The position numbers and the translations under genes were made by a program. A stretch of DNA of 35,715 bases, taken from NCBI RefSeq assembly GCF_000143415.4, contig NW_003314437.1:96348-132062 (forward strand), in the 5' to 3' direction. This DNA is from Selaginella moellendorffii. Its lineage: Eukaryota; Plantae; Lycopodiophyta. Numbering within the stretch: position 1 is the stretch's first letter; each line of letters starts with the position of its first letter. Of this stretch, positions 1-30,672 are shown piece after piece. The notes beneath the pieces were generated by a model that was given only the letters and a program-made list of their open reading frames with translations, did no database searches and was not told the DNA's origin.

Positions 1-1040
1 TCATTTTGAAGGGAAGAAGATATATAAGTTGATTAAACACAATTTTTATTAGAGGAATATGAAGGTTGATATCTCTCGAGTATTATAAATCATGCGAGCT
101 TTATCAGTGAGTAAAGGTGCCACGGGAGAAGTCTAGCGGACTTTTGCAACCTTTACCTATTCCTCAGAGCCGTTGGTGTAGTACCTCTATGGACTTCATC
201 ACTTGTTTGCCACAAACATAGAGGCAAAAGGAGCAAGTATGAGTCATAGTGGATTAGTTGACGAAGTATGTGCAGTTGTTAGCTCTTTGGAAGACTGCCA
301 CTACCTTAGACTTAGCTACGGTCTACTTGGAGAAGGTTTTTTCTGATTTTGGTTTGCCAAAGGACATCATTAGTGCTTGAGATTCAAAGTTCATAAGTGG
401 ATTTTTGAAGAGTTTTGTGAAGGTTATGCAAGTGACTTTAAAACTCTCATGTGAAGATCATCCTTAGACGGATGGGCAAACTAAGTGTGTGAATCAGGTG
501 GTGGAGGATATACTATGTTGTGGCGTTAGTCAAAGGCAAGGACAGTGGGATTTATATCTTTTGTTGGTGCAATTTGCTTACAACAATAGCCAACACAGTG
601 GAACCAAGTTAAGTCTTTACTTTGCCATGTTTGGAATGCATCCCTGAACAACAGTGGAGTTGGGATTGCATTTGCATAAGGATGTTCAAGACAAGCTTGG
701 TTCAAAGGCAACTGACCTAGCCACAGAACTTAATGAGATTCTAGTGATGTGCAAATGGAATTTGTAGGTAGCTCAAGATAGAGCGGAGAAGTTTGTTAAT
801 GAGCATCGCCAATTCCGGGAATATAAGGTGGGTCATTTTGTCTTCATGCAAGTGATCTTTCCGTCAAATGAGCGGTGGAACACATTAGTGCCTTTATGGA
901 TAGGGAAGAGTGACAAACTTTCCCATTAATATGCTGGTTCATATGAAATGCTGGAATGCGTTCATAAAGCGGCTTATTGAGTGTGACTACCAACTAGGGT
1001 GAAAATTCATCCGGTATTTTATGTCAGCCAGTTAAAAGAT
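1..1040 (+). pseudogene. Degenerate Ty3/gypsy integrase (Zn-finger tail, rve core, GPY/F motif)
   Basis: Manual translation gives SMDFITCLP (~185-210), FGLPKDIISA*DSKFISGF, HP*TDGQTKCVNQVVEDIL (~460-515) and AGSYEMLE...AAY*V*LPTRVKIHPVFYVSQLK (~930-1037). These match gypsy integrase motifs, with many stops and frameshifts. Confidence 0.9.
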
Positions 1041-1173
1041 GTACTATCTCAGAGTGACAGGTCTAATGCCTCCTTGATGTATACAGCTATGGAAGATGGA
1101 CTAGGAGCTTGAGCAGGGTTCCCTAAAAAGGGTGATCACTAATACAACTCATCTTTGGGACAAAGACTTTATT

Positions 1174-1192
1174 GGGGGGCGGGGGGGAAGAA
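1174..1192 (+). other. Polypurine tract (PPT) of gypsy element
   Basis: ggggggcgggggggaagaa lies directly before TGTTAAG, downstream of the integrase. Confidence 0.8.
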
Positions 1193-1193
1193 T

Positions 1194-1693
1194 TGTTAAG
1201 TGCCAACTTTGACCATGTGGTCAACATTAGTCAAAGGGAGGCTTAAAGGTATATTAGGCATGTTAGGGTGAAGTACTTAACCTACCTTATGGCTCATAGT
1301 GGAGTGGTGGCATAGAGGAGCTTTTGAGGTAGCTCAGGGTGGTTGGGTGGTGAGGAACCTCAAGAGGTGGCATAGCATAGGCTAGAGAAACTAAATCATT
1401 GTTGTTTTGCACCGGATCATAATATTGATATTGGAGCCCAACTCAATTCTCATGGCTGACGAGTGGGGCAAAAATATTCTGAAGGAATATTCAATATGGT
1501 GGATCTAGAGGGAGAATTAAGGTTTGGTAGACCCTAAGAGAAGGACCATAGTGACCAGAGGGTGGCCTAAGTATGATCGTGGGCGATCATTCCCTAACAA
1601 GGGGAGGATTGTCAAGCACCAAGTCAGGATAATAGGATAAAGAAAGGGCCCTGCAATCAAGTGATCAAGAGTGTAAGGGATAGGATCCTAACA
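1194..1693 (+). mobile_element. 3' LTR (composite type, copy 1)
   Basis: Starts TGTTAAG and ends CCTAACA, follows the PPT, and is colinear with 25778-26300 along its whole length. Confidence 0.9.
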
Positions 1694-10509: not shown

Positions 10510-10697
10510 GACATGAGAATGTCTCACACTTCTGCACAAAGTGTTGGAGCAATTCAACACCACTCTTCAGTCACAACTCTAGCAAGTTCTTCAGCAACAA
10601 TAGTAGCCCCTTCCTTTAGGCCAAAGATTAGTATGCCAGCAAAATTTGATGGTATGTAATGTGAAGTCTGTGGCTTCCTCAACTAAGTTAGGTTTTG
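10510..10697 (+). pseudogene. Ty3/gypsy Gag fragment interrupted by an LTR insertion
   Basis: 10621-10695 reads PKISMPAKFDGM*CEVCGFLN*VRF, matching the retrotransposon Gag motif PKISLP.KFDG...RGF.NQ. The 5' boundary is approximate. Confidence 0.65.
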
Positions 10698-10913
10698 TGT
10701 TAGTTACGAGCTTTGATCATGTAGTCAATGTAAGGTAAGTTCAAGGGTATATTAAAAATAGACTTAGGGTAAAGAATTTAACCTACCCTAAGGGCTCACA
10801 ACTTTTGAGGTAGCTTAAAGATGGTTGAGTGGTTAAAAACCTCAAGAGAAGGCATAACATAGTTTAGGTGAGGCTGATTCTCTATCTTTGTTATTTTGCA
10901 CTGGCTTATAACA
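10698..10913 (+). mobile_element. Short simple LTR (copy 3; homologous to module A of the composite LTRs)
   Basis: Runs TGTTAG...TATAACA and aligns with 25778-26010 (ttaacctaccct, ttttgaggtagct, aacctcaagag). It is followed by PBS-like tggtattagag at 10915 and an ATG GCC start at 10938. Confidence 0.8.
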
Positions 10914-11231
10914 TTGGTATTAGAGGAGTTGGTTGTGATGGCCAACCAAAATGAATGCCAGAATCCTAATGTCAATAGTGGTGCTGATGGCAGTGTTGAT
11001 GGAGTTGGTGAGGTTTGGACTATCCGTAATGTTGTTTATAAGCTACAAGTCTTCAACAAAAATCAACAAGAGATGCAAGAGGATGCTTTAAGTAAGACTT
11101 CCTTAGTGGATCAAACTCAAGATTTCAACTTTTTCCATTGATGGTGAGTGCATGGCTTAGCTAGCCAATGTGAAAAAGTTCTTAGGTGCCAAATTGTAAG
11201 CAACAAAAGAAAATGACTTGAGAGACAATCC

Positions 11232-22097: not shown

Positions 22098-22660
22098 TCG
22101 GACTCGGACTCGGACTCGGGCTCGAACTCGGACTCGGACTCAGTCTCGGTCCCGGTTTTGGACTCGGACTCAGTCTCGGTCTCGGTCTCAACCTCGGTCT
22201 CGGTTCCATCTCAGACTCCATCTCGGACTCCATCTCGGGTCCATCTTGGACTCCATCTCGGACTCCATCTCGGGTCCATCTCGGGTCCATCTCGGACTCC
22301 ATCTCGGGTCCATCTCGGACTCCATTTCGGGTCCATCTCGGACTCCATCTCGGACTCCATCTCAGACTCCATTTCGGACTCCATATCGGACTCCACTTCG
22401 GGTCCATCTCGGACTCCATCTCGGACTCCATATCGGACTCCACTTCGGGTCCATCTCGGATTCCATTTTGGACTCCATATCGGACTCCATATCAGACTCC
22501 ATTTCGGGTCCGTCTTGGACTCCATATCGGACTCCACTTCAGGTCCATCTCGGACTCCACTTCGGACTCCATATCAGACTCCACTTTGGGTCCATCTTGG
22601 ACTCCACTTCGGGTCCATCTCAGACTCCAACTCGGGTCCGCCTCGGACTCCATCTCAGAC
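22098..22660. repeat. Compound tandem array: 6-mer (CTCGGA) grading into 12/11-mer (CTCGGACTCCAT / CTCGGGTCCAT)
   Basis: Read directly: about 17 hexamers at 22098-22205, then about 38 units of 11-12 nt. Confidence 0.95.
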
Positions 22661-24340: not shown

Positions 24341-25777
24341 AAACCATCACCATGCCCTAGTGATTTGGGACTCAAACCCAAGCACTAGAGGGTCGGGACT
24401 CGAACCCAACCTCCGTATATGCATCTACGGACGGCATCACCCAGGATGCTTGGCATGATTCATCATGCTGGTGCACCAACTTATATTTAAAGCGCGCTAC
24501 AGATCACAGCTTAGGAACCTAGTTCCTCCACACTGCCAAGTCCTCTCACTTGACAAGTCTGTGATCATGCATGGACTCCTCCATGCTTGGCCCATGGCTC
24601 ACCCTTTTTGAAGTTATCACCTTCAACTAGGGTATTTGTTCGCCCGACTTGCCAATCTCGCTTGGCAAGTCTTCCGACCACTGTAACATGGTTCCTGCAT
24701 AAGCGTGAAAGTCCTTGCCCATCGACTTTCGTTCAAAGCCCTCTCTTTGAACACTCGGGAACTACTTCCCTAACCTTGATAGCCTTGCCTCATGGCAAGC
24801 TTCAAGACCACGCTTCTGCTGCGCCACTCTGATTTTGCGCGTTCCATTGAACCATTTACACTTTGGCCTTTCTAGGTACTAAGCTACTTAGAATCGTCTT
24901 TGGGAACCTTGAAGGAACTCTGTCCCTTAGCTTGCTAAGGCCTCCTTTTTTGCAAGCTTTATAGTTGCCATATAGTCTAACATGGACAATTCCATATTTT
25001 AGACTCCCTATGGCATCACGGTTGTTAGCAACAACATCCTCGAGCACCCTCTTGATTCTCCACTCCCCACTTGCATAACCACCGTTGGATATGCCCTTCA
25101 ATTTCTATGGTTCAGTTCTATCCCAATACTACTTGCCTTTTGGCCCCATATGTTTCCTTTGGTTATTCTCCTCCAGATTAGGAGGATAGCTTTGCACATT
25201 TTACTATGCCTTAGCAAGTATTCTTAGAGATGAACCTACCCGATAGCTTAGGGAGTGTTCCTCAATCTTGGCTATGCTCACCTTATAATCCCATACATCG
25301 GGATTAACGTTGTGCTTATGGGCCTTACATTCGACCTATATGTNNNNNNNNNNNNNNNNNNNNNNNNNNNNNNNNNNNNNNNNNNNNNNNNNNNNNNNNN
25401 NNNNNNNNNNNNNNNNNNNNNNNNNNNNNNNNNNNNNNNNNNNNNNNNNNNNNNNNNNNNNNNNNNNNNNNNNNNNNNNNNNNNNNNNNNNNNNNNNNNN
25501 NNNNNNNNNNNNNNNNNNNNNNNNNNNNNNNNNNNNNNNNNNNNNNNNNNNNNNNNNNNNNNNNNNNNNNNNNNNNNNNNNNNNNNNNNNNNNNNNNNNN
25601 NNNNNNNNNNNNNNNNNNNNNNNNNNNNNNNNNNNNNNNNNNNNNNNNNNNNNNNNNNNNNNNNNNNNNNNNNNNNNNNNNNNNNNNNNNNNNNNNNNNN
25701 NNNNNNNNNNNNNNNNNNNNNNNNNNNNNNNNNNNNGGATCTTATGATCCTCCCCATACGTCATGAGGCACCATACA

Positions 25778-26300
25778 TGTTAGGCGCCAGCTTTGACTAC
25801 GTGGTCAATGTCGGTCAAAGGGAGGCTCAAGGGGATATTAAGGCATGTTAAGGTAAGGGACTTAACCTACCCTAGGGCTCACAGTGGAGCGGTGGCGCAG
25901 TGGAGTTTTTGAGGTAGCTTGGGGTTGATTGGCTGGTGAGGAACCTCAAGAGGTGGCGTAGTATAGTCTAGGGCAACTAGATCTTTGTCTTTTTGCGCCG
26001 GATCATAACATTGGTATCAGAGCCCAGTTCGATTCTCATGGCTGACGAGAGGGGCAGGAATATTCTGAAGGAATATTCAACATGGTGGATCTAGAGGGAG
26101 AACCAAGGTTTGGTAGACCCTAAGAGAAGAACCATGGTGACCGGAGGGTGGCCTAAGTATGATCCCGGACGATCATTCCCTGACGAGGGGGAGGATTGTT
26201 AGGCACCAGGTCAGGATAATAGGATAAGGAAAGGGCCTTGCAATCAAGTGATCACCCCTTTAGCCAGTTGGCTTAGGGTGTAAGGGATAGGATCCTAACA
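25778..26300 (+). mobile_element. 5' LTR (composite type, copy 2)
   Basis: TGTTAGG...CCTAACA perfect 7-bp inverted termini, followed by a PBS. Homologous to 1194-1693. Confidence 0.92.
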
Positions 26301-26301
26301 A

Positions 26302-26313
26302 TGGTATCGGAGC
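26302..26313 (+). promoter_or_regulatory. Primer binding site (tRNA-iMet type)
   Basis: tggtatcggagc lies 1 nt after the LTR end. A second, perfect TGGTATCAGAGC lies inside the LTR at 26012-26023. Confidence 0.85.
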
Positions 26314-26910
26314 CATATTGTGACATCTACGGGTGTCAAGACGGATCCAAGGAAGGTGGCTGTGGTGGAAAACTGGCCTACACCGACTACAGTGGCCGAG
26401 TTGCGCAGTTTTCTTGAGGTGGCTATTCCTTTGACGCAGATGCTACGCAAGAATGTGCCATTCGAGTGGAAGATGCCACAAGAGGAGAGTTTTGTGGCAC
26501 TGAAACGATTGTTGAGCGAGGCTCCAGTGCTTTGCATTGCTGATCCATCGAAACCTTACGAGGTGACATGCGATGCGAGTGGTTATGCACTGGGAGGAGT
26601 TCTCATGCAAGAGGGACAGCCTATTGCATATGAGAGTCGAACTTTGAATTCTGCTGAGCAACGCTATTCCACATATGAGCAAGAGTTACTCTCTATTGTT
26701 CATGCTTTGCGGACGTGGCGGCACTATCTTTATGGTGCAGTGTTCGTGGTGTTGACAGATCACAAACCACTTGTGTATCTTTTCACACAGAAGGAGTTGA
26801 CACTAGGCAGCTCGTTGGATGGTCAAACTCATGGAGTTTGGGGAGTTTCCTATTGAGCATCGTCGCGGGAAAGTCAAATGTGGTGGCGGATGCTTTATCT
26901 CGTGTTCGTC
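26314..26910 (+). pseudogene. Ty3/gypsy RT C-terminus/RNase H fragment
   Basis: HIVTSTGVKTDPRKV..WPTP...LRSFL, TCDASGYALGGVL, YEQELL, TDHKPL and NVVADALSR. Frameshifts occur near 26810 and 26870. Confidence 0.93.
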
Positions 26911-27014
26911 ATGTNNNNNNNNNNNNNNNNNNNNNNNNNNNNNNNNNNNNNNNNNNNNNNNNNNNNNNNNNNNNNNNNNNNNNNNNNNNNNNNNNNNNNN
27001 NNNNNNNNNNNNNN

Positions 27015-28352: not shown

Positions 28353-28401
28353 GGCGTTATTCCATAATTATTTGGTCTTTTAAATATAGCATATTTGCGA
28401 G

Positions 28402-28525
28402 AAGATTGGTGAGGAGAAAGCAGCCAGAATCATCAAGCAGCTGGTAAAGACCTTCAAAGAGATTTATTTGAGGGGCGTGGTTCACCAGAATCTCAAGCTC
28501 GACAACATTCTTTCCAAGCTAAACA
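28402..28525 (+). pseudogene. Ser/Thr kinase (CDPK-like) subdomain VI fragment
   Basis: EEKAARIIKQLV...RGVVHQNLKLDNIL, a decayed HRDLK.EN.L motif. Confidence 0.65.
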
Positions 28526-29249
28526 TGCATGACAAGTGGTGATCAGCACCTTTAGGAGATATCACAACAGCGAAGTACATGGCAGCTGAGGTGGTGGAGA
28601 ACAAGGATTGGAGCTCTACATGGCAGCCATCGAAATGTGGGGGCTAGGAGCAATTTTATACAAGACGCTGGGAAAGGGAGGATACCAGCCAATGGAAGCA
28701 TTTGATCTCGTGTGACAGGGGGCGACCTCTGTTTCGGATCCACGGCCAACATCTTAGAAAAGGAGATCCTCCACTGCAAACAAGCAAGGACCAATCAGGT
28801 TCAGGTTCGATCAGGTTCTGCAACACCCATGGATTTGTCAAAAATTGCAGCATTAAGACCGACAAGCTGTGAAGGAGTGGTGTGAAAAGGAGTGCTCCCG
28901 GCCTTGAGAACAACTTGGGCATGAAGAAAGTTCGAGTGGCTTAAAAGAAAATGCCAGCAGTAAGTTCCTATTTCCTTTTCACCATTACTAACTTCATTTG
29001 CTTGCGTTTTTCTTTTTTGTATTCTCCGGACATCAACATCTCTTATGTCTATGGCTGGAAAACATTTTCAGTGGCTGCCGAGAACAACTGCAGAATGAAA
29101 ACAAGTTGGAACGAAAAGGAAAACGAGGGAGTTGAAATGTAAAGAAAGAATTGTAAAACGTTTATTGATATATAAATAAAGATCAAAGTTGAATCGAGAT
29201 CTTTCACTAATCATCCAATATATTAAACGAAAGAGCCTCATTGATCATT

Positions 29250-29468
29250 GCAGTAGGTGGCTCTAATTTTATATATATATATAAAATATTGGAAGTTTCA
29301 AACAAAATAATGTAAAATATGCAGCTTATTCACAATGAAATATTTTAGATACTGCTCAAGCAACGGAGATAAAAATCAGAAAACAAACACAATTCTAAAT
29401 GCAATGAGCAACTAATGGGTGGTCTTGATAAATTATTAAAAGAGATAAATCCCTATGCTAATGCATTT
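29250..29468 (+). mobile_element. Helitron RepHel N-terminal fragment, copy 1
   Basis: Direct repeat of 30440-30661, encoding decayed NIGSF...ILD...LDKLLKEINPYANAF. Confidence 0.75.
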
Positions 29469-30236: not shown

Positions 30237-30672
30237 CTTGGTAAGATGGAAAAACAATGCATACTTTGTAAGGCCCTTTTTTTTTATGGTGGAAAATGTT
30301 TTCAATTGTAATTGTGACAGGAGAATAGCAACTGAAAAATTACATCCTTTTCCATGCTTTCTCCAAAGACTATTAATTTTAAAGATTTAATACAAAATTA
30401 TAGTAGTGCAGCATCAATAGGTGCAAACATTGAAGAGATTGCAGTAGGTGGCCGTAACTATTTTAAGATATATGAACAAATTTAACATAATATTGGAAGT
30501 TTCAAACTAAATAATGAAAAATATTCACAATTATATATTTTAGATACCTCTCGAGCAATACAAATAAAAATGAAAAACAAACACAATTCTAAATGCCATG
30601 AGCAACTAATGGGAGATCTTGATAAATAATTAAAAGAGATAAATCCCTATGCTAATGCATTCACAATGTTGT
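30237..30672 (+). mobile_element. Helitron RepHel N-terminal fragment, copy 2 (Zn-finger + AQLYI.D region)
   Basis: LGKMEKQCILCKALFF..E..NCNC and ASIGANI...FKIYEQI*HNIGS...YSQLYILD...LKEINPYANAFTML. Confidence 0.82.

Follow-up and report, generated by a model that had tools for sequence, protein, structure and literature searches.

A composite gypsy/TRIM block in Selaginella moellendorffii, best explained as a recombinant joined within a shared PBS

The window (the whole stretch of DNA analysed here, 35,715 nucleotides of Selaginella moellendorffii contig NW_003314437.1, positions 96,348 to 132,062) carries a 523-bp block in which two LTRs of different size enclose a PBS, a short spacer and a PPT, and which is followed by a second PBS. 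The modules and motifs that a preliminary description had placed here, coordinates included (A, PBS, ATG GCT, PPT, B and second PBS), are all present in the sequence. The block, referred to below as copy 2 of the composite, and the coding fragment behind it are laid out as follows:

25778-26010, plus strand: module A of copy 2, a complete 233-bp LTR, TGTTAGG...GGATCATAACA, with TG...CA ends
26012-26023, plus strand: inner PBS, TGGTATCAGAGC, with a single T between A and the PBS
26024-26184, plus strand: TRIM internal domain, 161 bases, leader-like, with a short ATG GCT ORF at 26038
26185-26196, plus strand: inner PPT, GAGGGGGAGGAT, abutting B and kept in copy 1
26197-26300, plus strand: module B, a 104-bp LTR, TGTTAGGC...GGATCCTAACA
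26302-26313, plus strand: outer PBS, TGGTATCGGAGC (11/12), with a single A between B and the PBS
26320-26914, plus strand: gypsy RT connection/RNase H fragment, directly behind the outer PBS and cut by an N gap

Module A of copy 2 has a TATA-like box near 25834-25841. The motif TATATTA, about 57 bases into A, is kept in all three A copies of the window (3/3); a T at position 25834 is missing from copy 2 and present in the majority of public contigs (see below). As had been claimed, A and B resemble each other at their termini only: the tips are alike at 12 of 13 bases at the 5′ end and at 10 of 11 at the 3′ end, whereas the interiors align with a score of 23.5, no better than shuffled sequences (15.5 ± 6.4). 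The notion that B is an internally deleted A was ruled out, the two interiors being unrelated. Affiliation of the block with Cassandra, or with LTRs derived from 5S or tRNA sequences, was also rejected, since Rfam and ARAGORN gave no such match across the window, with E values up to 1 admitted.

The inner PBS is of the tRNA-iMet type. The segment directly 3′ of it, CCAGTTCGATTCTC (26024-26050), may extend the complementarity to plant tRNA-iMet past the usual 12 bases. The junction between A and the TRIM part falls inside the PBS: the base separating LTR from PBS is the T typical of A, the first base past the PBS is already of the TRIM type, and contigs of the A type part from the window directly after 26022.

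The contig that carries copy 2 is 1178 bases long (25737-26914) and has N runs on either side (25344-25736 and 26915-27014). No PPT precedes the A module of copy 2 and the outer PBS is present after B, which bears out the 5′-LTR position ascribed to this copy. The outer PBS runs into mid-pol, with neither leader nor gag in between; the segment 26320-26914 matches Pfam RT_RNaseH (1.7e-33) and RT_RNaseH_2 (1.8e-32). Relative to most public contigs this RT piece has a private deletion of in-frame size at 26416, where the contigs have about 40 extra bases (GTATGGCTAGTTACTACCGACATTTCCAGCATAAGTTTGCA-like) encoding ...ASYYRHFQ.... Past the second N gap the sequence is unrelated; it includes a kinase-like fragment and no integrase. 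The kinase-like frames (28390-28869) are broken by stops or small introns and match Pfam Pkinase at E 1.7e-5, below the curated cut-off; they are a host gene or pseudogene just past the gap that ends the copy-2 contig. On the other side, the 41 bases before copy 2 were considered as an inverted piece of the TRIM; their best local alignment, to the PPT region in reverse complement, was dismissed as not significant (score 22; shuffles 15.9 ± 2.2, maximum 27).

The same composite is found a second time in the window, within a 2.4-kb contig and with A, PBS, spacer, PPT and B in the same order as in copy 2:

111-1109, plus strand: decayed integrase-like frames with several stops, whose translations end in an HPVFYVSQLK-type motif
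1171-1193, plus strand: gypsy PPT before copy 1, TTGGGGGGCGGGGGGGAAGAAT, the same motif as the consensus of the loose ends before A in contigs
1194-1693, plus strand: composite copy 1 (A, PBS, internal, PPT, B), with no PBS afterwards
1194-1424, plus strand: A of copy 1, abutting the gypsy PPT
1426-1437, plus strand: inner PBS of copy 1, TGATATTGGAGC, decayed by three transitions
1438-1595, plus strand: internal part of copy 1, a TRIM interior
about 1596-1609, plus strand: PPT of copy 1
1610-1693, plus strand: B of copy 1, with a 20-bp deletion

Aligned end to end, the two copies are 83% identical (BLAST E 7e-159), and their flanks are unrelated. Identity by module amounts to 83% in A, 90% in the spacer (26024-26184 against 1438-1598) and 93% in B; divergence is thus greater in A (17%) than in the spacer and B (7-10%). 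The differences are transitions for the most part, a pattern expected in old methylated repeats. Both composite copies are old and dead.

Copy 1 had been described as sitting in the 3′-LTR position, behind an integrase. The position itself is borne out by the PPT before the block and by the lack of a PBS after it. Support for the integrase is thin: the HPVFYVSQLK-type motif, integrase-like in appearance, comes with a weak Pfam match to SH3_Tf2-1 (E 0.007), and the short, decayed pieces of the integrase core gave no match in Pfam or PDB.

The preliminary description had also assigned the block the architecture of a TRIM. The order LTR, PBS, short interior, PPT and second LTR is there, and so are a non-coding interior of 161 bp and a total length, 523 bp, below about 1 kb. 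In the strict sense the block is not a TRIM. In place of two near-identical short LTRs it has A (233 bp) and B (104 bp), alike at their tips only, and no TSD surrounds the unit in either copy: to the left of copy 2 stands ...CATACA and to its right ATGGT (from the PBS), while copy 1 has the PPT before it and GTTTA after it. Two LTRs as unrelated as A and B would not outlast a single replication cycle, which would homogenise or eliminate the pair. Because the interiors are unrelated, the A...B unit is not the product of one normal cycle and could not have kept both of its ends had it replicated alone.

Viewed as an LTR, the block shows a PPT before the copy in 3′ position (1171-1193) and a PBS after the copy in 5′ position (26302-26313). 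The pattern of a three-LTR complex, in which a middle LTR is preceded by a PPT and followed by a PBS, is found in A of copy 1 (with its decayed PBS) and again in B of copy 2. The earlier proposal that the whole mini-element replicates as one unit agrees with all four junction contexts; the element that it calls for, bounded by two composites and flanked by a TSD, is absent from the window, the partner end of copy 1 lying outside the window and that of copy 2 in the N gap.

The third A copy of the window is of another kind:

10698-10926, plus strand: copy 3, a diverged A-type LTR and PBS (TGGTATTAGAGG), 64% identical to A

The LTR part of copy 3 (10698-10913) has the same tips as A and is followed by an ordinary, different leader with ATGGCC and no TRIM part. 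Neither a partner LTR for copy 3 nor further pieces of B or spacer were found in the window at E up to 10. The segment just before copy 3 (10578-10697) reads by eye as a decayed gypsy gag, PKISMPAKFDG...CGFLN.VRF; if this reading holds, the A′-type LTR at 10698 is nested in another element. The 71-aa frame of this segment had no Pfam match, and no downstream continuation of it was found.

The usual surroundings of A were read from Logan contigs matched to 25737-26914, which stem from three runs of one sample and one older run, all of the same coded organism. Thousands of contigs match this interval; their depths were not read as copy numbers, contigs giving neither copy numbers nor RNA ends. 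The consensus preceding A is the gypsy PPT (...TTGGGGGGGAAGAAT). About 25 contigs (one run, X1) depart from the window immediately behind the inner PBS; their consensus, AAGTTGGTTGCGATGGCCGACC / AAGTTGGTTGCGATGGCCGACCAAGCTGAA, resembles the leader of copy 3. Contigs that leave directly after A (26010) show low agreement, as random flanks would give. Because the contigs have the PPT before A and a different leader or random flanks after it, A by itself is the usual LTR of its family. The data lend no support to the composite as "the LTR of a gypsy family", as had been stated; A is a complete, free-standing LTR of a very abundant Ty3/gypsy family.

Contigs also bear on the remainder of the block. 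In several of them (three runs, one sample) the end of B is joined back to the PBS-spacer segment, from 26295 to 26006 and from 26299 to 26010, a step back of 290 bases; further joints run from 26308 to 26031 and from 26312 to 26071, with spacer-like letters in between in the last case. The joints of period 290 imply that B-PBS-spacer-PPT-B units exist, single or arrayed, with a length of 394 bp and LTRs of 104 bp, and the contigs place the TRIM interior behind B and a PBS. As read from these contig sequences, the PBS-spacer-PPT-B part of the block is the interior and one LTR of an independent 394-bp TRIM. A-only elements, which the preliminary description had proposed to count, are on record in the contigs and as copy 3, and independent B units as B-PBS-spacer joints.

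A TRIM of S. moellendorffii, SmoRetroS4 at ADFJ01000100:60349-60741, has been published with a length of 393 bp and an LTR of 104 bp (Gao et al. 2016, PMC4717578, Table S16). It is among the subfamilies with tandem arrays, and the same paper lists a gypsy element, SmoLTRA4 at ADFJ01000078:22401-26773, of 4,373 bp with an LTR of 104 bp, 98% LTR identity and 1,218 aa (Gao et al. 2016, PMC4717578). The B-PBS-internal-PPT-B unit deduced from the contigs agrees strikingly with SmoRetroS4 in size, and in size only, at 394 against 393 bp with LTRs of 104 bp, the length of module B. The likeness extends to the existence of a gypsy relative with an equal LTR size and to membership in a subfamily that forms tandem arrays. 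The TRIM part is thus SmoRetroS4-like and probably already published, the match being by size only. The block differs from SmoRetroS4 in having an unrelated 233-bp gypsy LTR as its left LTR. The start of the spacer resembles an A-type leader, including its ATGGC start, and the TRIM therefore descends from a gypsy element within that broader lineage.

Taken together, we consider the composite to be best explained as a gypsy/TRIM recombinant joined inside a shared tRNA-iMet PBS. Its most likely origin is template switching by reverse transcriptase, and copies 1 and 2 would have arisen separately. In its specific form, namely that the two copies are parts of separately formed gypsy and TRIM hetero-complexes of the three-LTR type joined at the PBS, we give this explanation about an even chance. 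Gypsy and TRIM RNAs, having LTR tips and the tRNA-iMet PBS in common, would be co-packaged in one particle. Minus-strand DNA that has reached one PBS would continue on the other RNA at the identical PBS, and the second strong-stop transfer would then be completed. A start on the TRIM RNA would yield B-PBS-gypsy-PPT-A-PBS-TRIMint-PPT-B, the right end of which fits copy 1; a start on the gypsy RNA would yield A-PBS-TRIMint-PPT-B-PBS-gypsy-PPT-A, the left end of which fits copy 2. Both products would be three-LTR hetero-complexes of the type proposed by Sabot and Schulman. If, in the case starting on the TRIM RNA, the plus strand were primed at the upstream gypsy PPT, the block would be placed at both ends of the product, that is, a composite LTR would result.

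The ingredients of the recombinant, namely A-only elements, independent B-PBS-spacer units and a junction within the PBS, have all been observed, and three-LTR hetero-complexes account for both copies equally well as does a composite LTR. This last equivalence cuts both ways, as both copies show exactly the contexts of a composite LTR, and two switching events are hardly more or less parsimonious than one origin with later amplification. Neither complex is seen whole (the left end of copy 1 lies outside the window and the right side of copy 2 in the N gap), and SmoRetroS4 is identified by sizes only. For the switch itself the PBS would have to be still intact when minus-strand synthesis ends, and this may call for a third RNA or for RNase H digestion that stays incomplete. 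The composite-LTR alternative holds that one switching event put A-PBS-TRIMint-PPT-B at both ends of a gypsy, which then multiplied as a sub-family. Plus-strand synthesis would be primed at the upstream gypsy PPT and transcription would start and end in A; the outer PBS and the outer PPT would be used, with U3 and R coming from A and the remainder forming an extended U5. Such a scheme appears workable on paper with no new enzyme activity. It fits the junction contexts (4/4), the existence of two copies that are 83% alike in unrelated flanks, and the retention of the TATA-like box in all three A copies. We nonetheless regard it as possible but doubtful. The window shows neither an element with the composite at both ends nor a TSD, and most A-type elements, to judge from the contigs, end in A alone. 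The outer PBS of copy 2 leads into mid-pol on a 1.18-kb contig between gaps, so the B-PBS-RT junction rests on one short contig. The unequal divergence of the modules (17% in A, 7-10% in spacer and B) also speaks against a block inherited as a whole. Finally, copy 2 departs from a strong contig majority at 14 sites, and copy 1 has the majority letter at 12 of these. The two minority letters common to both copies (25893 and 26038) are CpG transitions, which can recur, and they are the only derived letters that the copies have in common. A private composite lineage is not visible from this comparison.

Two further explanations dispense with a switch during reverse transcription. Neighbouring insertions of an A-type gypsy, the TRIM and a SmoLTRA4-like element could have been turned into shared-LTR arrays by unequal or illegitimate DNA recombination after integration, using the roughly 25 bases of identity formed by LTR tip and PBS. 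Complex elements derived by recombination, and tandem TRIM arrays, are common in plants (PMC4717578, PMC13570524, PMC1950507), and copy 2 bears additional damage, with a PBS-to-RT deletion as well as the deletion at 26416. The homology is very short, and the same exact junction within the 12-base PBS would have been needed twice. Moreover, since no PBS normally stands behind a 3′ LTR, a pre-existing A-TRIMint-B chimera would still have to be supposed. We therefore hold this route to be improbable. Even less credit can be given to the idea that the assembly fused reads from different repeats into contig 25737-26914. The contig is only 1178 bases long between N gaps, and copy 2 has many private letters relative to the contig majority; the A-PBS-spacer-PPT-B order is, however, independently present in copy 1, on a 2.4-kb contig. 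At most the B-PBS-RT junction would be artefactual, and an assembly chimera as the source of the block is very improbable.

The recombinant reading has precedents. Complex retrotransposons with three LTRs, formed by template switching, have been published (Sabot and Schulman 2007, PMC1950507), as have tandemly arrayed TRIMs (Gao et al. 2016, PMC4717578) and, in a survey of sugar beet, TRIM chimeras with LTRs donated by other families (Mob DNA 2026, PMC13570524). Like the complexes of Sabot and Schulman, the block has one LTR bordered by a PPT and, at its opposite end, by a PBS, and for both a single aberrant cycle of reverse transcription with two RNAs can be proposed. Those complexes join two copies of one family via homology in R, whereas the block joins two families, one of them a 394-bp TRIM, at the PBS, and shows neither TSDs nor whole complexes. 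Among the arrayed and chimeric TRIMs (PMC4717578, PMC13570524), arrays of the L3I2 type occur, copies with an extra LTR donated by another family are reported, and template switching is invoked as the cause; in these respects the block is like them. It differs from these TRIMs in that the LTR donor is a coding gypsy family and in that the same chimera occurs at two loci, in LTR-like positions. The block is thus a further case of retroelement recombination of a known kind; a Russian-doll LTR is possible but unproven.

The block represents a physical link between a coding gypsy family and a TRIM that have LTR tips, PBS and leader in common. This link supports, without proving, a role of the gypsy lineage in packaging and copying the TRIM, a matter still unsettled for nearly all TRIMs. 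A bolder reading, to which we lean less than to its opposite, is that the block is a heritable LTR, and that a gypsy sub-family replicates with the TRIM interior and a second LTR in its U5. Were this so, each RNA would possess two PBSs, two PPTs and four att-type ends; cDNAs limited to A, limited to B or of TRIM size could be shed, and helper element and parasite would have a direct route of interconversion. If inherited as an LTR, the block would be an unusual one, with inner priming sites of a working type.

Searches for further copies outside the window were made with both protein and DNA. With the 178-aa RNase H ORF as query, a protein word search found no match of the same family, the best matches having 46-59% identity at comparable coverage; one match reached 68% over a third of the query. 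An exact-product look-up found none, and no further DNA copies were found in two metagenome scans. Two other repeats lie within the window. In a GC-rich array at 22098-22660 a 12-base unit, TCCATCTCGGAC, recurs about 39 times, with additional periods of 23, 35, 47 and 59; the 4-kb stretch around the array has a GC content of 45-55% and a strongly negative GC skew. At 29313-29467 and 30508-30661, two AT-rich sequences of about 155 bases repeat each other directly at a distance of 1194-1195 bases, one segment of the repeat being 95% and another 76% identical; the pair may represent a local duplication or mark the two ends of a further small element.
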